Positions 1 through 10,259 of a stretch of 10,259 bases of DNA are shown here, in pieces. The translations under genes were made by a program, and so were the position numbers. Numbering within the stretch: position 1 is the first letter of the stretch; each line of letters opens with the position of its first letter. The stretch is from Geosiphon pyriformis uo1 (Eukaryota > Fungi > Glomeromycota). Where the stretch lies: positions 1 to 10,259 of the forward strand of contig JAAOMT010000401.1 of assembly GCA_016748015.1 (NCBI GenBank). Reading direction: 5' to 3'. A model generated the notes under the pieces. That model worked only from the letters and a program-made list of their open reading frames with translations, made no database searches and was not told the DNA's origin.

Positions 1-49
1 GGGGGGGGGTAAATTCCCAATTAGAGTATTGGACATCCGATGTACACCC

Positions 50-2562
50 GATTGGACCTTCCAGAGCTGGTAGTAGTTGTGTATGTTCAAGTCAATAGGG
101 TCCTGGGGGGCATAGTACCTACTTTTACGTGGTACAATGGCACTCCATAATGGTCCTACTGTCCTTACCATTATACCCGGTAAGCATAGAAAGAATGTTA
201 CTATCCTTTATAGGGTAGATTGGCGGACAGTCTAGGGGGCTCTCCCGACCAGAATTCTGATTTTAGAATGGACTTATCCTACTCTCAGCCTCCCTGGACT
301 GATAAGTAGAGCCATTATGATCTATTCAAGGTTGGTTATAGGGTACAGAGGCCATCTTAATAGCTCCCAACAGCTAGGACGACAAACTCCTTAGTAAGGA
401 GCGTCTCCATGAATGTACTGGGTTCTATGCTTATTCCTTGTAGGCAACCATAATGGTTACGAACAAAGGTTACTGGATTGGTTGGGGGTGGGGAGGTCTG
501 GTTGGAAGAATTATGGGTAACCTCTAGATCTATCTTAGCAAAATACCCAACATTCTATTTACTGCCTGGCTAGTGGAATTCACTAGGTCAGACACCAAAT
601 TCCACAACCCCAAAAGTGGGATTATGGCTATGATATAGCTACAAGGTTCAGTACAAATCGTACCTAAGTACCTTACTAACCATTTGGTACCCGATAGGTA
701 GAGTGCCACACTGCCCTTAAAATCAAATTATGGGCAAGCAGGCTATCACCAAGTACCCTCAGGCAGTTTGGTACTGCAGATGGGGGCAAACGGGGACAGG
801 GGTGGGAGGCTATAGCCACTACCAGCTTTATCTCCCGAATTGGGATGGGAGGCTAGCTAGGGCCCCCATGGGTATGGGGCTATCGGTAGTCAATAACACC
901 AAGGATTGGTGAGTGCTTAGAGGGCCCGATACGAGTAGGAAGTGTTCCCTACTTGCAGATCGCCAGAAGCCCCCCTTTTTCCCGCATACACTACTGTATG
1001 TACCACATGAACCCTAAGCCCTATGGAGGACTCAGTGTACCTATGGTAGGGTCAGCGATACCTAAAGGTCATACCCCCATTGGCCAAGGGATCTACCTAC
1101 GTATTAACTACTGCAGTCCATCAAAAGGGACCTAAGGGGTGACAGCCTTTGTTTGTTTATGACTACCCCAGTTCAGGATTAAAGGGGGTTTATGAGGTTG
1201 CTTCCCTAAAGCATGGTCCCATAGTCTCTGTTCCACTGCTCTTAGGATACCCACATTCAATGGGAATGCCTAAGTATAGTTCCTACGTTGGTAGCAGTGT
1301 GCATAGCTATAGACCGGTCTTATGGGTACCTGTACCATACGGACGTATGGTAGGTCCCCCATCACTGTAGGACTATCTCAAGCCTCCCATTATGGGGAGA
1401 GCAGATTGGTATGTTTATACCGAGATAGTAAACACTGCCATTGATGGGAAGTATTACAGTAGGTGGATAGCCTACCAGCCTGTCTATCTCCCCAGGTACG
1501 CCTAAACATCCATTTCTGGACGAATAGAGTACTTGGTAAGATTCTAACCGCTCACCCATAAGGATGGAACGGTTGAGCAGAGGTCCATAGGTGTAATACC
1601 CTATTGGCCTTTGCTTCATAGGACAGGGGACATGTGTTACCTGTGGGATAGGATACCCTTCGATGTCTTCCAGACATCTTAGGGGCTGGAACGGAGACTG
1701 ATACCGGGGACGCAAAGCCTGGGTGGTGGGGGGACCACCGCAGACTCTGAATCCTGCGGGATCCTCCCCATCACAGACTACCTACTTAGATCACTATTGT
1801 TTCTCTCTAGGCCAAGGGAGTATGGTGGCTTAAGTCTATCCTCTTATTGAACAGGGAATCCCTAAAGTGTAGAACTCTAATGGTAAGGTTTACCATATCA
1901 CAGGGTTAGTAGACCAGTAGGTATTAGACATCTCTCCTTCCAAAGGAGGAAGGGATATCTTGTAAGGGGTCAGTAGTGCTAACAGCCTACATGACTATAC
2001 CAATCAATGGTTAGAAGTATGGCACTAGTACCAGTACACCCAATGTGTACCAATCCGTGACATATCCTCCCTTACCATTCAATGGGGTGGAGCGGATGGG
2101 AGGACTGTGTCCTTTATAAACAAGGATTTGCTAGAAACCCTAGCTATGGAGCCAAGGAACTCAACCAACCCCCGTTTAGAGGTCCACCCATAGGGGAGCG
2201 GAGACCTTAGGGATCCCTCCTCCAACCACACTTCCCTTACATTTCTACCCTACTTAATTAACTACTGAGTCCAATAGGAAGGGTTCCTACCCAATCAACT
2301 GTTGGGTCATCTGAGTACTAAAGCAATGATGTAGGCTATTATATTCCTAACAATCAAAGCTGAGTGGGCTACACATACAGTCGGTAATGGATAGTCCAGT
2401 TGATGCCCTACGGCTTATACTAACCTACTCTTAGGCGTATCCCGTACGGATCTACTGGTTATCTTCCCCAATTCCGAATTTGGGCATGTAGAGTACATGA
2501 ATCAGATACCAAATAGTTGTGTTGGATGGACTCAATTCCTGGATAATCACGATTGTGATTAG
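50..2562 (+). ncRNA. Large structured non-coding RNA module, paralog A (unknown family; true ends undetermined)
   Basis: Colinear anchors shared with B and C: atgttcaagtc(g)aataggg 83, gcttattccttg 429, gggcaaacg 784, atgaaccc 1007, ttacagtaggtggatagcctaccagcctgtc 1454-1484, ctacctact 1778, tggcttaagt 1826. Covarying stems at 934-953, 984-1001, 1333-1352 and 1880-1896. Confidence 0.75.
1454..1484 (+). repeat. 31-nt block invariant in all three paralogs (also 3906-3936, 6309-6339, 8759-8789)
   Basis: ttacagtaggtggatagcctaccagcctgtc was read directly at each site. Identity extends to 41 nt between A (1446-1486) and C (6301-6341). Confidence 0.95.
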
Positions 2563-4967
2563 AGTTGGATCTACCTAGGGAGTTCAATAGAGTTAGATGT
2601 TCAAGTCGAATAGGGTCCTGGGTACGGGATCGTGGGGATCTGTACGGAATCCAGAAGGGTCATACCGTACTAATAATCAGATTGGTATGGAAAGAATGGT
2701 ATTGGTTGGGCTATGTACTTCCAGCAAGGATTCTCCCGACCATAGTACTTGAGTCACGTATGGACACCGATGTATTGATAACCCTTTACCAACAATCATG
2801 CCCACATATGACTATTTAAAGGTTGGCATCGGGACGTAGGCCCCCCACGGCATTGTGCGTCAAGCACTCTGGACCGATGGGTTAGGATAGCCGATCTAAC
2901 TCAAAGCTTATTCCTTGGTATAAACAGTGTGGTTCTAACGAAGGTAGGGGGGGGGCTTTGGTACCTTGGTACGTCTGGTCTGAGAGTACTTTGGATAGCC
3001 CTGGTTGGATCCTACATAGTACCCCATTCTATCTCCTTATTGCTAGTAACGTCATCTAGATGACCTATATCCCTTATCTCCATACCCCCTTATTTAGGGG
3101 ATTTGGGATAGGATTCTAGCTACCAATAAAGGACTTAAATCGGACATCAATTCCTGTCTAACCAACAGGGATCCGATATGGTAGAGTGTAAAGCTCCTTG
3201 AGAAAGGAGAAGACTATCGCCCGCATCCCCTCAGGTGGATTGGTACCACCGAGTGGGCAAACGGGGTGAAGGGTGGGAGGCTAGGGCCACTATCAGGCCC
3301 ATACCTGGTAGGCAACTACACCAAGAGTTGGTAAGTTGTCCTAGAGCATATGGATGGTGCGCAATGGTTCGCGCACTACAGCCATGCTCCAAGCCCCCCT
3401 CCACACCGCAGATCCCTACTGGGATCTGTACCATATGAACCCCTAAACCGGAGTAACTTTATGTGTACTCTAGGTAGGTAAGCGGTACCGATGTCTGTCT
3501 CCACCATAGGCCAAGAGATCCAGCACCTGGTAACCATCTATGGATCCATTTGTGGACCTAAGGTGGTAATGATTAGAAGTGGTAGGTGTAAATTCCTACC
3601 AACCCCCCTAATTGAACCAGGGAGACTGTATTAGAGCCTATGGTCCCTTAGCTTATCATCCCACTGCACTTAGGTTACCCACACTCAATGGGGACCACCT
3701 GAGATTGGTTACTTTAGTAACTGGTAGTGAAATAAGCTTCTCACAGGTCTTACAAGTCCCTGTCCTGCACGGACAAGCAGGAGGTCCTTCACTACTGTGG
3801 ATCTTTCATCTGGGGGGGGGGTTTTGTACTCCCCCATATGACACCCTTCACTTCCCCATCGGGGAGGTAAAGAGGATCCGACAATACCTATTCTCATAGG
3901 ATGTCTTACAGTAGGTGGATAGCCTACCAGCCTGTCCTACTAATCGACTCTCCCCGAGTATAGTTAGATACCTTATTACCCGATTCTTTGGGATAATAGG
4001 TTGGAGTATCCCCCCTTTATGGGGGGACGCTTGAGGTACAGGGGACTTGTGTTACCGGTTGAACTAAGATACTTCGACAGTTTCAAACTGCCTTAGGGGC
4101 TGTAACTGGGATCGTGACCTCTTTTCGAACGCAAAGTAAAGTAGAGATGCACCTCTCCAGGACCTTACTCAGATAGAGGACCGAGAGCTACATACTACCT
4201 ACTAAGTCACTGTTGTTTTACCATGGCCAAAGGGAGTGTGGTTGGCTTAAGTCCTATACCTGTTGTCCATCCCCCCAATACCATAGGATAGGGTCAGAAC
4301 GGCTATGTTAGCCGTGTACAGTGCAAAGTAGTAAGAGTATTCATCCGACGCCTCCATGCCCTCCCGTATGGGGAAGACAGGATCTTGGAGTCAATTGAGG
4401 ATTTTACCCCAATCCTTGTTGGCTATCTTAGGAGTAGTAAGGATCATGGGTTTAGCACTAGCACACCCCTATGAGTGTAAAGCTGTTCATCCCCTTCCAC
4501 CCCACTCAATGTGGAGGGGCAGCTGAGTAGTACTCAATTGGTCTACGGACAACTGGACCCTTACGGGTTACCAGTGCAAGGTCCCCGCGGGGTTTTGGGG
4601 ACCATCGTGTGGTAATAGCAGAGGATATCTTACTCCCTATTATGCCATGTCTTACTATCCAAGATGCCTGGTTACCTAATGGATGGTACTCCTACCAAGG
4701 TTATTATAGTTGGTGGTTTGTTATTACGTATCTTATCCCGGTACCTACTCTTACTTATTAGGTAATGGTGATACAGCACATGAACCCTGGAGAAACACCA
4801 GTCATATCAGCTTGCTTCATAGCCCCCTTTTAAAGGAGGGACTAGAATATTTGGACGGAACGTGTAATCATTCCCCCCCCTGAGATAGACGAGTAGTCTG
4901 CTAATATGGGGGTTTGTATGTGATGCAGGCATTGTAATGGTAACCGATTGGCATTTGACTGTACTCT
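2563..4967 (+). ncRNA. Large structured non-coding RNA module, paralog B
   Basis: Same anchors at 2597, 2906, 3255, 3906-3936 and 4195. Covarying stems at 3357-3376, 3408-3429, 3763-3782 and 4299-4315. Confidence 0.75.
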
Positions 4968-7354
4968 GATTGGACCTTACATGGTTGGAGGACGGTTAGG
5001 ATGTTCAAGTCGAATAGGGCCCGACGGCTTTACCTTAACGGTTATGGCACGTCAGATTGGTCCTACTGTTCTCTGCAATCCCCTTGTAGAGTCAGGAAGA
5101 ATGGTTGGTTTAATTGGGGCACATGTACTACTAATGGGTCCTCCCGATCATAACTTTGGATTTTAGAATGGACTTATCCTACTATTGTAACAGTTTACTA
5201 ACTAGTAGAGCCATTGGATCTATTAAAGGTTTGTGGTGGAGATTCCAGTTGCGAACCCATAGTCTTAATACTCCTCCATAGGAAAGGGAGAGCCCTATGA
5301 GTAATAGGGTCCCTTGGTTCGAGACGGTTACCCATGCTTATTCCTTGGAGGCACCTAATGGTTACGAACGAAGGGGCTCTGAGCTCCAGTAGTGGGGAGG
5401 TTTGGTTTTAGATAGTTATGAGTAACCTCATTAGTACCTACATGGTGTCCAGCAATTCTATCCCAGCCTGCTAGGATAATCAACTAGGTCATACTTCATT
5501 TTCCACTACCCACATTATTTGTGGGATGTGAATAGGATCTAGCTACCAGGTATGGATCAAATCGGACCTCAGTACTTTGCTAACCACTGTACTCCGATAC
5601 GGTAGAGCGTAAAGCTGCTTGTAAGCAGAATACTGTCACCAACGCACCCTCAGGGGGTTTGGTACCACCGAGTGGGCAAACGTAGATTTAGGGGGAGGCT
5701 AGGGCCACTACATCTCACTACCCCATGGGGAGGGGGGGGGGTGGAAGTAAGACTTCCCCATTTAGGGGAGGTCCGGTAGTCAATCACACCAAGGATTGGG
5801 AGGCCACTAGGGCAAGAGTACGGTTGCGCAATGGTTCGCGCACTGCAGACTCGCCACAAGCCCCCTCTCTCTACGCATGGGATACTATCCCATGTACCAC
5901 ATGAACCCGGGCATTTGTAGACCTCAGGTGTACCTATGGTAGGTCAGCGCGGTACTGGGTCCTTCCCAACCATGGCCGAGGGGTCTACACTTGGGATACT
6001 AAGCGCTACGTACCCATTACATGGGTCCAAGGTGGTAATAGGTCCAAGGGTTTAAGTACTCTTGACTATGGTCCCATAGCTTACTATCCCACTGCTTGTA
6101 ATATCCACAGAGAATGTAAACGTCCAAGCGGGTCTCCTTAGTGTAGCAGTGATCTTAGCTATCACGGTCTTATGGGTCCCTGTACCATACGGACGTATGG
6201 TAGGTACCCACTACTGTGGAGCTATCATATGCTACCTCATTGTAAGAGGATAGTAGATTGGTATTTTCATACCATGATAGTGCTCACACTACCCTTTTCA
6301 GGGAAGTATTACAGTAGGTGGATAGCCTACCAGCCTGTCTACCTGTCAATACCCTCCCCGGGTATAACTAGGTACCATAGTACCCGACTTCGGGTACTTA
6401 TCCGTCCCCCAACGGGTGGGGGACTTATGGTGTACAGGGGACTCATGTTACCGGTTGAAGAGGATACCCTTCGACACCTTCCATATGTCTTAGGGGCTAT
6501 AATCGTAGACCTTTTGTAGACGTACAGCCTGAGAAGTATGGTACTTACACAGGACTGCATATCCTGGGGGGTCCACACGACTATAGACTACCTACTATGA
6601 CACTGTTGGTTTTATCCCATTGGCCTGGGAGTGTGGTGGCTTAAGTACTCCAACTTGACTACCAACCCCCATGGCTCTAGGATAGGGTCGGAATGGCTAT
6701 GTTAGCCATGTACATTTACAAGCGGAGCCAGCTATTCATTATACCTTAGAGACCCTAAGAGGAAGGAGAGTATTTTTAGGGTCAGTATGGCCATTCACCT
6801 ACTAGATCTCACTGAGTAGTGTAAGGGTCTTATGCTAGCACTTATCCCAGAAGTGTTAAGCTGTCTTCAACCACCCTACCCATTTAATAGGGGGGGTGGG
6901 CAGCTGAAGAGGCGTAAGATTCCCTATTTATAAGGGACAGTACCTAACAAGGTAATTAGTTGGATTTGTCCACTAATGGAGAAGAGTACCAATTGGACTC
7001 CCTTCCCTGCCACTGCCACTACCTCAGGATACTTTGGTAGAGAACTTGAAGACTAAAACTGTGAATAGCCCTCTAAATATAGTTGTGGGTTTGTTCTTAG
7101 GTTTAGGTAAATATTGGTATCCCTACAAGCTCTTATCATAGATTGGTAATACAGCACAATATCCTTACTGGGAAGTACCAACGGTACCAGTATGCCTAAT
7201 GGAGCCTACTAAATAGGAAGCCCATAGGACGGTGAGGAACGGGTTAGAATCCCAACATCTGGTACGAACCTTGTATATTACTGATATGAGGTTGATCTTT
7301 TAATAGGGGGGGGGTAAATTCCCAATTAGAGTATTGGACATCCGATGTACACCC
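4968..7354 (+). ncRNA. Large structured non-coding RNA module, paralog C
   Basis: Same anchors at 5001, 5336, 5674, 6309-6339 and 6588. Covarying stems at 5825-5842, 5875-5895, 6183-6202 and 6693-6709. Confidence 0.75.
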
Positions 7355-9867
7355 GATTGGACCTTCCAGAGCTGGTAGTAGTTGTGTATGTTCAAGTCAA
7401 TAGGGTCCTGGGGGGCATAGTACCTACTTTTACGTGGTACAATGGCACTCCATAATGGTCCTACTGTCCTTACCATTATACCCGGTAAGCATAGAAAGAA
7501 TGTTACTATCCTTTATAGGGTAGATTGGCGGACAGTCTAGGGGGCTCTCCCGACCAGAATTCTGATTTTAGAATGGACTTATCCTACTCTCAGCCTCCCT
7601 GGACTGATAAGTAGAGCCATTATGATCTATTCAAGGTTGGTTATAGGGTACAGAGGCCATCTTAATAGCTCCCAACAGCTAGGACGACAAACTCCTTAGT
7701 AAGGAGCGTCTCCATGAATGTACTGGGTTCTATGCTTATTCCTTGTAGGCAACCATAATGGTTACGAACAAAGGTTACTGGATTGGTTGGGGGTGGGGAG
7801 GTCTGGTTGGAAGAATTATGGGTAACCTCTAGATCTATCTTAGCAAAATACCCAACATTCTATTTACTGCCTGGCTAGTGGAATTCACTAGGTCAGACAC
7901 CAAATTCCACAACCCCAAAAGTGGGATTATGGCTATGATATAGCTACAAGGTTCAGTACAAATCGTACCTAAGTACCTTACTAACCATTTGGTACCCGAT
8001 AGGTAGAGTGCCACACTGCCCTTAAAATCAAATTATGGGCAAGCAGGCTATCACCAAGTACCCTCAGGCAGTTTGGTACTGCAGATGGGGGCAAACGGGG
8101 ACAGGGGTGGGAGGCTATAGCCACTACCAGCTTTATCTCCCGAATTGGGATGGGAGGCTAGCTAGGGCCCCCATGGGTATGGGGCTATCGGTAGTCAATA
8201 ACACCAAGGATTGGTGAGTGCTTAGAGGGCCCGATACGAGTAGGAAGTGTTCCCTACTTGCAGATCGCCAGAAGCCCCCCTTTTTCCCGCATACACTACT
8301 GTATGTACCACATGAACCCTAAGCCCTATGGAGGACTCAGTGTACCTATGGTAGGGTCAGCGATACCTAAAGGTCATACCCCCATTGGCCAAGGGATCTA
8401 CCTACGTATTAACTACTGCAGTCCATCAAAAGGGACCTAAGGGGTGACAGCCTTTGTTTGTTTATGACTACCCCAGTTCAGGATTAAAGGGGGTTTATGA
8501 GGTTGCTTCCCTAAAGCATGGTCCCATAGTCTCTGTTCCACTGCTCTTAGGATACCCACATTCAATGGGAATGCCTAAGTATAGTTCCTACGTTGGTAGC
8601 AGTGTGCATAGCTATAGACCGGTCTTATGGGTACCTGTACCATACGGACGTATGGTAGGTCCCCCATCACTGTAGGACTATCTCAAGCCTCCCATTATGG
8701 GGAGAGCAGATTGGTATGTTTATACCGAGATAGTAAACACTGCCATTGATGGGAAGTATTACAGTAGGTGGATAGCCTACCAGCCTGTCTATCTCCCCAG
8801 GTACGCCTAAACATCCATTTCTGGACGAATAGAGTACTTGGTAAGATTCTAACCGCTCACCCATAAGGATGGAACGGTTGAGCAGAGGTCCATAGGTGTA
8901 ATACCCTATTGGCCTTTGCTTCATAGGACAGGGGACATGTGTTACCTGTGGGATAGGATACCCTTCGATGTCTTCCAGACATCTTAGGGGCTGGAACGGA
9001 GACTGATACCGGGGACGCAAAGCCTGGGTGGTGGGGGGACCACCGCAGACTCTGAATCCTGCGGGATCCTCCCCATCACAGACTACCTACTTAGATCACT
9101 ATTGTTTCTCTCTAGGCCAAGGGAGTATGGTGGCTTAAGTCTATCCTCTTATTGAACAGGGAATCCCTAAAGTGTAGAACTCTAATGGTAAGGTTTACCA
9201 TATCACAGGGTTAGTAGACCAGTAGGTATTAGACATCTCTCCTTCCAAAGGAGGAAGGGATATCTTGTAAGGGGTCAGTAGTGCTAACAGCCTACATGAC
9301 TATACCAATCAATGGTTAGAAGTATGGCACTAGTACCAGTACACCCAATGTGTACCAATCCGTGACATATCCTCCCTTACCATTCAATGGGGTGGAGCGG
9401 ATGGGAGGACTGTGTCCTTTATAAACAAGGATTTGCTAGAAACCCTAGCTATGGAGCCAAGGAACTCAACCAACCCCCGTTTAGAGGTCCACCCATAGGG
9501 GAGCGGAGACCTTAGGGATCCCTCCTCCAACCACACTTCCCTTACATTTCTACCCTACTTAATTAACTACTGAGTCCAATAGGAAGGGTTCCTACCCAAT
9601 CAACTGTTGGGTCATCTGAGTACTAAAGCAATGATGTAGGCTATTATATTCCTAACAATCAAAGCTGAGTGGGCTACACATACAGTCGGTAATGGATAGT
9701 CCAGTTGATGCCCTACGGCTTATACTAACCTACTCTTAGGCGTATCCCGTACGGATCTACTGGTTATCTTCCCCAATTCCGAATTTGGGCATGTAGAGTA
9801 CATGAATCAGATACCAAATAGTTGTGTTGGATGGACTCAATTCCTGGATAATCACGATTGTGATTAG
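7355..9867 (+). ncRNA. Redundant second read of paralog A
   Basis: Matches 50-2562 at +7305. Confidence 0.72.
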
Positions 9868-10259
9868 AGTTGGATCTACCTAGGGAGTTCAATAGAGTTA
9901 GATGTTCAAGTCGAATAGGGTCCTGGGTACGGGATCGTGGGGATCTGTACGGAATCCAGAAGGGTCATACCGTACTAATAATCAGATTGGTATGGAAAGA
10001 ATGGTATTGGTTGGGCTATGTACTTCCAGCAAGGATTCTCCCGACCATAGTACTTGAGTCACGTATGGACACCGATGTATTGATAACCCTTTACCAACAA
10101 TCATGCCCACATATGACTATTTAAAGGTTGGCATCGGGACGTAGGCCCCCCACGGCATTGTGCGTCAAGCACTCTGGACCGATGGGTTAGGATAGCCGAT
10201 CTAACTCAAAGCTTATTCCTTGGTATAAACAGTGTGGTTCTAACGAAGGTAGGGGGGGG
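9868..10259 (+). ncRNA. Redundant partial read of the 5' part of paralog B (truncated by window end)
   Basis: Matches 2563-2954 at +7305. Confidence 0.7.

Follow-up and report, generated by a model that had tools for sequence, protein, structure and literature searches.

The closest described counterparts of the element analysed here, a protein-less DNA circle or perfect tandem array from Geosiphon pyriformis, a fungus that stands at the base of the mycorrhizal lineage, are found among plasmids, introns, minicircles and large non-coding RNAs. The element was read from a contig of 10,259 nucleotides (nt) (JAAOMT010000401.1, positions 1-10,259, forward strand), which in its whole length is called the window below. 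The VS plasmid of Neurospora mitochondria is a protein-less circle of 0.88 kilobases (kb) with one unit; its only product is a structured RNA, found in monomer length, with a self-cleaving and ligating ribozyme, and its propagation makes use of helper enzymes, with a helper retroplasmid as the source of RT (reverse transcriptase). Group I and group II introns multiply as diverged paralogs in fungal mitochondrial DNA, and amplified DNA circles occur there as well (Podospora senDNA alpha). The ori/rep elements of yeast petite mitochondrial DNA measure ~0.3 kb, contain three GC clusters and are repeated in identical copies. Kinetoplastid and diplonemid minicircles form multipartite genomes with a constant region and with gene cassettes or guide RNAs, and the mitochondrial minicircles of red algae likewise represent a multipartite minicircular organelle genome (PMC10250338). 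The known fungal mitochondrial plasmids are circular dpo plasmids, linear dpo/rpo plasmids and RT retroplasmids, all three types encoding their own polymerase; traces of dpo plasmids are common in arbuscular mycorrhizal fungi (PMC3630166). OLE, ROOL and GOLLD, finally, are RNAs of 0.6-0.8 kb, bacterial or phage-borne, which are encoded by single-copy genes and are present in Rfam (PMC12286853).

Circularity, the lack of proteins and the likely mitochondrial setting in a fungus are all that the Geosiphon element has in common with the VS plasmid. It differs from it in its 2.4-kb units with a 1.35-kb core, in carrying several diverged paralogs per circle and in the lack of a recognised cleavage motif. 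With OLE, ROOL and GOLLD it shares the features of a large non-coding RNA recognised by covariation, with many conserved helices and a function not known at discovery, but its units are two to three times larger and are arranged as tandem paralogs on protein-less circles in a context of fungal-mitochondrial type. Multi-domain folds with long-range closing helices, diverged paralogs and circular DNA are reminiscent of group I and group II introns, from which the element is distinguished by the absence of a model match, of a domain V or P7 core, of the remnant of an intron open reading frame (ORF) and of flanking exons. Like fungal mitochondrial plasmids it is a small, high-copy extrachromosomal DNA, yet it encodes no protein. 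Like the petite ori/rep elements it is ORF-less, tandem and high-copy, with conserved hairpin-forming blocks and variable spacers; in contrast to them, its units are 2.4 kb long, 35-47% diverged and contain ~250 conserved pairs. The resemblance to minicircular organelle genomes consists in many small circles that are alike in size and composition and each carry little cargo or none, whereas the circles compared here have no common sequence, the universal minicircle sequence (UMS) is absent and the cargo is a giant folded unit. The explanation we prefer, to which we would give an even chance, is that of a high-copy protein-less circle of fungal-mitochondrial type with units that give rise to very large structured non-coding RNAs of an uncatalogued family, probably serving the propagation of the element.

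Positions 7306-10259 of the window match positions 1-2954 without one difference; the window therefore runs 1.4 times around a circle of 7,305 nt, or along a perfect tandem array with this period. The circle is high-copy, as seen from the k-mer depth of 120-145 throughout the window in the source run X1. The monomer splits into three colinear units of 2513, 2405 and 2387 nt, together 7305, which abut head-to-tail with no exons between them. Their alignment has 2672 columns, in which invariant blocks, the longest of 31 nt, alternate with unalignable spacers. An earlier note, made from the letters of the window only, had described three diverged tandem paralogs of these lengths, with anchor spacings of 346, 309 and 335 nt and a 1-nt deletion in the start block of unit A; all of this was reproduced. 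At every junction the unit is opened by a start module GGACC...ATGTTCAAGTCGAATAGGG...GGTCC with a T-loop-like motif. The window contig is labelled C164 and a sister contig, which carries further units, C81; other contigs of the Geosiphon pyriformis assembly mentioned below are C82, C165, C52 and C402. The start module (~150 nt) is found in all six copies, the truncated unit Z on C81 included. The elements of the circle are as follows.

1-7305, no strand assigned: complete monomer with an exact period of 7305 and no protein-coding capacity; k-mer depth 120-145 in run X1.
7306-10259, no strand assigned: read-around duplicate of 1-2954 (unit A once more, then the first part of unit B), with agreement at 2954/2954 positions for an offset of 7305.
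50-2562, plus strand (tentative): unit A, 2513 nt, defined by the three-unit alignment and a full-length profile match; folds better than its shuffles (z -4.2).
2563-4967, plus strand: unit B, 2405 nt, defined by the three-unit alignment and the profile; unit X on C81, rather than A or C, is nearest to it (support 97/95).
4968-7354, plus strand: unit C, 2387 nt, spanning the monomer junction 7305/1, defined by the three-unit alignment and the profile; sister of unit A (support 87/90).
83-101, also 2597-2615 and 5001-5019, plus strand: near-invariant, T-loop-like unit-start block ATGTTCAAGTC[G]AATAGGG, within the ~150-nt start module closed by GGACC...GGTCC.
1838-2562, with 4255-4967 in B and 6649-7354 in C, plus strand: variable tail of unit A and its counterparts, alignable among A, B and C only, with weaker conserved structure.

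The identity of the tails among A, B and C is 27-53% per 150-column window. Homopolymer G runs of 8-10 nt are situated at window positions 1-9, 2941-2949, 3814-3823 and 5738-5747, i.e. at the monomer junction and in variable spacers. They may mark places where slippage is frequent, or sites prone to sequencing errors.

The fold was analysed with RNAalifold on a core alignment of five full units: A, B and C of the window and X and Y of the sister contig. A strict column-wise Watson-Crick helix finder was too brittle for the MAFFT alignment. The parts of the fold discussed below are located as follows.

495-1845, with ~2970-4254 in B and ~5400-6648 in C, plus strand: structured core of unit A, ~1.35 kb, and its counterparts; profile positions 445-1809 match units X and Y of C81.
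1454-1484, also 3906-3936 and 6309-6339, plus strand: invariant 31-nt block with the hairpin GUAGG-UGGAUAG-CCUAC, identical in A, B and C.
1617-1837, also 4032-4254 and 6428-6648, plus strand: 3' core domain (covariance model R1, 222 positions, 53 pairs), 170-226 bits; 85% paired against 38-45% with slid partners.
985-1000, plus strand: example of a covarying hairpin, the stem of which differs in every unit with the loop context kept.
671-687 (loop CUAACCA), 933-955 (loop AAUGGUUC) and 1662-1678, plus strand: other covarying hairpins of unit A, from the helix table.
741-751/1826-1836, 1003-1007/1821-1825, 1035-1052/1780-1794 and 1311-1335/1621-1646 (within 741-1836), plus strand: nested long-range closing helices of the core of unit A, present in the consensus folds of both strands and with compensatory changes.

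The consensus of the five units comprises 249 pairs, with 87% of the cells paired against 38-46% when the partners are shifted, and 90 of its pairs are doubly compensated, against 18-30 with shifted partners. As RNAalifold itself selects for covariation, the identical pipeline was run on 15 alignments with columns shuffled within classes of equal conservation and gap pattern. The consensus energy of -182.4 compares with -73.2±5.2 in this null, and the 90 doubly compensated pairs with 28.8±5.1. Support was found for each helix class, local, medium and long-range. The last of these (more than 150 columns) contains 94 pairs, 26 of them doubly compensated, to be compared with 10±4 in the column-shuffled null and with 4-8 when partners are shifted. 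The 3' core domain, aligned by the covariance model and evaluated with a curated pair counter, is 85% paired (38-45% with slid partners); 11 of its pairs show two-sided changes and none of 500 shuffles reaches its covariation score. A conserved fold with compensatory changes exists, well beyond chance, and the statement of the earlier note that helices covary between the copies is borne out on the enlarged set of five units.

In typical cases, hairpin loops of 7-8 nt and junction blocks stay constant and the sequence of the stems is a different one in each unit; the nested closing helices of the core span 300-1200 nt. Even the hairpin of the 31-nt block, GUAGG/CCUAC, reads GUUGG/CCAAC in unit Y of C81, a two-sided change from A..U to U..A with the pairing kept. 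Each unit folds better than its own dinucleotide shuffles, with z from -2.9 to -7.8, and the unrelated circles C82 and C165 do not; the structure is therefore specific to the units and not to the genome in which they reside.

The units are non-coding under any triplet code. With three stops in use, the longest open frame has 139 amino acids (aa); reassignment of any one stop codon raises this to 231 aa at most. At the variable sites of 25 ungapped conserved blocks (997 nt) there is no codon-position bias (0.378 against a null of 0.390±0.007), and only 26 of the 194 pairwise indels are multiples of three. The period-3 Fourier test, which is independent of the genetic code, gives a peak of 3.6 on the circle and of 8-18 in ordinary contigs of the same assembly. 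No Pfam match was obtained for ten of the longest ORFs from the window circle and the sister circle, and a tRNA scan of the window and C81 found no tRNA. The earlier note had held that the constraint is not on codons and had proposed a check for coding signal under any code; alternative stops, periodicity, codon bias and Pfam all agree with it.

In the public annotation the window contig carries a "hypothetical protein G9A89_000474" (201 aa) at 6172-6516, plus strand, and surroundings. As there is no coding signal of any kind, this gene model is almost certainly spurious and is flagged here as an annotation error, a protein called on a non-coding element. When the spurious ORF was used as bait for related DNA in the protein database, the only match was G9A89_000474 of Geosiphon pyriformis itself.

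The lack of ORFs and the spacings that are not multiples of three would also fit pan-edited cryptogenes, that is, protein genes concealed by insertion/deletion editing or by an odd code, and three monomers diverged by ~30-40% within a perfectly repeated higher-order unit resemble the higher-order repeats of a neutral satellite. Neither cryptic genes nor a satellite predicts two-sided stem changes with the pairing kept, long-range helices included, or invariant loops beside unalignable spacers, and neither a period-3 signal nor codon bias was found. We consider this pair of explanations extremely improbable.

The age of the fold can be judged from the sister contig. C81 reads around a circle of 10,186 nt, the minus strand of which carries the full units X and Y and the truncated unit Z. 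Only profile positions ~445-1809 (~1.35 kb) and the ~150-nt start module are common to both circles. Over the core the five units are 53-65% identical, and the terminal branches of their tree measure 0.24-0.55 substitutions per site. In the tree, B groups with X of the other circle (support 97/95) and A with C (87/90), so the paralog lineages had separated before the present circles arose, and all through their divergence the fold was preserved. The covariance model R1, searched over the 128-Mb assembly, finds the five known full units only. Contigs of run X1, in turn, leave the window at conserved blocks (886, 919, 1465, 1476 and 5022) into sequences absent from C164, C81, C82 and C165; the sample therefore holds more members of the family than were assembled.

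Outside the units, 4.6 kb of C81 contain no gene that could be found and consist of strongly G/T-skewed degenerate repeats. The skewed stretch itself (~7000-10186 plus 1-500, ~3.7 kb) has a GC skew of +0.43 to +0.63, with 34-40% G and 9-14% C, and is made up of short degenerate repeats without genes. It appears to interrupt or replace most of the third unit Z.

The earlier note had further proposed that the units be compared with Rfam, that a covariance model be built and searched for, and that homologs be sought in metagenome collections. Rfam 15 has no match to the whole window at E<=1. At E<=10 there is none on unit C or on C81, and on unit A a single chance microRNA match (E 3.3). The model R1 gave the result described above. 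Patterns built from the invariant blocks, exact or gapped, have no match in the metagenome, GTDB prokaryotic-genome and viral collections, and sensitive blastn against plasmids and phages has none either. Recognisable ribosomal RNA (rRNA), group I and group II introns, RNase P, OLE/ROOL/GOLLD and small ribozymes are excluded at the level of these comparisons. They support the view that the family is in no catalogue.

The hallmarks of individual candidates were looked for one by one. A group II intron is marked by a 34-nt domain V with the catalytic triad, a bulged A in domain VI, a GUGYG 5' end and often an RT/maturase ORF; neither RF00029 nor the D1-D4 models match, no ORF or Pfam match exists and GUGYG is missing at the aligned unit starts. 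rRNA of the large (LSU) or small (SSU) subunit would be betrayed by universal blocks, namely the peptidyl-transferase centre, the sarcin-ricin loop, the 530 loop and the 3' end of SSU rRNA, and no rRNA model has a local match at E<=10. Positions 1656-1690 of unit A do resemble 23S rRNA 2495-2530, in the peptidyl-transferase region; the other units differ there and the stem covaries at this place, and rRNA was rejected. For a kinetoplast minicircle, the universal minicircle sequence GGGGTTGGTGTA (CSB-3) is without an exact match in any locus, and with up to two mismatches it occurs at chance level (3 against 2.3 expected). For a CRESS or rolling-circle satellite of single-stranded DNA, the origin nonanucleotide TANTATTAC has no match.

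It is nevertheless conceivable that the units are an extremely diverged form of a known mitochondrial RNA and do not represent a new class. The most plausible candidates would be group I or group II introns that have no ORF, with rRNA as the other one. The fungal-mitochondrial-type context would suit such an origin, as would the many diverged paralogs with a common core fold, a unit size resembling an intron plus a decayed ORF, and internal loops which, read from the sequence, resemble GNRA-receptor motifs. This is countered by the lack of any Rfam match to introns, rRNAs, RNase P or ribozymes on single units even at E<=10. No domain-V-like hairpin, P7 core or universal rRNA block is recognised in the units, neither the ORFs nor Pfam show any trace of an RT, maturase or LAGLIDADG ORF, and the units stand head-to-tail with no exons. 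We therefore regard a diverged known RNA as quite unlikely.

Two neighbouring small contigs, C82 with a period of 7265 and C165 with one of 5771, are exact read-arounds like C164 and C81. All four have a composition of their own (GC 43-48%, CpG 0.2-0.4, GpC ~0.6, TpA 1.2-1.5, GG/CC 1.4-1.8), unlike ordinary contigs of the assembly with 24-36% GC. In the circles compared, no sequence is common to C82, C165 and the unit-bearing circles, and none of them has a period-3 signal. C82 (1-8556, a 7,265-nt circle) contains no gene, no Rfam match and no excess folding. C165 (a 5,771-nt circle) encodes at 1562-1645, plus strand, a tRNA-Leu(UAG) that is normal and has a long variable arm (50.5 bits); the circle has no ORFs and no similarity to the structured units. 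The flanks of an intact 89-aa nad4L on the small contig C52 (1492-1761, minus strand) have the circle-type composition too. Compared with solved structures, this nad4L ranks best with fungal mitochondrial ND4L of equal length (7zm7_L, 1.6e-17, then 4wz7_L) and places plant, plastid and bacterial homologues below the fungal mitochondrial ones, while being only ~36% identical to the nearest database proteins. The window circle is probably one of at least four small circles of fungal-mitochondrial type and not bacterial, as composition and this gene suggest. The comparison with bacterial OLE, ROOL and GOLLD made in the earlier note was thus the wrong frame, since the assembly is fungal and the circle-type composition is tied to a fungal-type nad4L. 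On another small contig, C402, to which an SSU rRNA search led, a GC-rich (54%) eukaryotic 18S rRNA is situated at 1506-3575, minus strand. It differs from the 18S copies of the megabase contigs, which have 42% GC, and may be rDNA of foreign, perhaps human, origin.

The sample was not axenic, and the circles might instead stem from another organism, as the organelle DNA or plasmid of a protist, an alga or a bacterium. Their GC content of 43-48% and their dinucleotide biases differ sharply from ordinary contigs, none of the words of the window occurs in two other runs of the sample, and the assembly offers no mitochondrial core genes for comparison. The nad4L of the same composition, ranking best with fungal mitochondrial ND4L of identical length, speaks against a foreign source, and so do the missing kinetoplast UMS signature and the lack of matches in bacterial genomes, plasmids, phages and metagenomes. 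A foreign origin is very unlikely in our opinion.

Several observations weigh against the preferred reading, that of large structured RNAs borne on a fungal-mitochondrial-type circle. The covariation rests on few, related sequences, as only five full copies from one sample are at hand. No RNA run contains the sequence, and the only DNA run having it is probably the source. No catalytic or processing motif is recognised in the units. Neither COX1 nor cytochrome b could be detected in any part of the 128-Mb assembly, which therefore lacks the main mitochondrial genome, probably filtered out, or else unrecognisable, and the mitochondrial assignment of the circle is suggested by its composition alone. 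The description "2.4 kb structured" is also somewhat generous. The core (~1.4 kb) has the strongest structure (energy z -11.4, compensated-pair z +5.7), the tail is weaker (-5.4 and +2.6) and the 5' part of the units the weakest (energy z -3.5), so that "1.4-kb core plus accessory parts" is the safer formulation. The earlier note had proposed a conserved fold of ~2.4 kb on the scale of rRNA: the fold does exceed the null, but it is strongest in the ~1.4-kb core, with ~1.35 kb common to the sister circle.

The remaining points against it concern the strand. The ratio G·U:A·C is 39:25 in the pairs predicted on both strands, which is no clear strand signature. In an alignment-free test, where folding was restricted to Watson-Crick pairs and the sandwiched single mismatches were then classified, it is 19:19. 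The consensus energies of the two strands are similar (-182 and -168). Per-unit folding energies favour the plus strand in C, X and Y and not in A and B, and a few conserved plus-strand G·U pairs do exist in the 3' core domain. The signature of RNA on one strand is absent, or too weak to show with five sequences. A need for structure in both polarities would also explain the strand symmetry.

These strand results speak for an alternative according to which the fold acts at the DNA level or purely in cis: the units would be arrays of replication or maintenance elements, comparable to single-strand origins or to the ori/rep elements amplified in yeast petites, and not genes of a large trans-acting RNA. 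The folded molecule would be single-stranded DNA or else a short transcript used for priming. G·U shows no asymmetry against A·C, the two strands are about equal in their folding and no transcript is known; furthermore, a protein-less circle must hold cis-acting maintenance signals, and nothing but units is present on this one. On the other hand, the ~1.35-kb architecture with covarying nested long-range helices and with conserved 7-8-nt loops over variable stems is a pattern typical of folded RNAs. Palindromic DNA elements conserve their arms and not their loops, and the origins of DNA replication known to us are about ten times smaller than this architecture. C82 and C165, moreover, are maintained without such units or any excess structure. 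Given the scale of the fold, the nested long-range helices and the loops that stay conserved on varying stems, the substrate is most likely RNA folded as a single strand, and the DNA-level or cis-only alternative seems to us improbable, though it deserves to be kept in mind.

If the units do act as RNA, the following course may be proposed as the most economical one. Long transcripts of the circle would be made first. Each unit would then fold into a large multi-domain RNA consisting of the ~1.35-kb core with ~250 pairs and long-range closing helices, of the start module and of a freer tail. This fold would serve the persistence of the element as a template, a primer or a processing structure, with the enzymes encoded elsewhere, by the host or a helper. 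The protein-less VS plasmid of Neurospora operates in this way. Propagation of the element itself is proposed as the role because the units are protein-less, multicopy and anciently diverged and reside on circles with nothing else. We infer the action of the fold at the RNA level, the transcribed strand, the mitochondrial location and the function; the "ribozyme or scaffold" of the earlier note is speculation.

A housekeeping function is less likely than self-propagation. The units could belong to a family of housekeeping organelle RNAs, acting as a scaffold or catalytically, of which several paralogs are kept. Long-term purifying selection on the fold would be understandable for such RNAs, and contigs of the same composition carry normal genes, the tRNA-Leu on C165 and nad4L on C52. 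However, at least five copies at 35-47% divergence in one organism are unusual for a housekeeping RNA, and neither Rfam nor the public collections searched have a counterpart. A housekeeping family has, in our estimate, little chance of being the right answer.

Beyond the preferred reading of RNAs that serve the propagation of their own circle, a bolder formulation may be tentatively advanced, which we hold to be somewhat short of an even chance. The units would constitute a new class of RNA on the scale of rRNA (core of at least 1.35 kb, ~250 pairs), without a relative in any catalogue, encoded only as arrays of ancient paralogs on protein-less, high-copy minicircles in the mitochondria of an early-diverging fungus and acting as an RNA-centred replicon or as a ribozyme or scaffold, possibly with both polarities structured. 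Apart from ribosomes and self-splicing introns, practically no conserved RNA fold longer than 1 kb is known to us, and the largest "ornate" orphan RNAs are bacterial ones of 0.6-0.8 kb. If the interpretation is true, a fold of 1.4-2.4 kb kept through 35-47% divergence would show that structured RNAs can be larger than those known so far and would be a natural target for cryo-electron microscopy and ribozyme screens. The element would also represent a solution different from that of the fungal mitochondrial plasmids which encode a polymerase, and one has to ask by what means a replicon that has no genes can persist. We know of no report of a many-piece mitochondrial genome in fungi, and the circles described here bear on whether Geosiphon has one.

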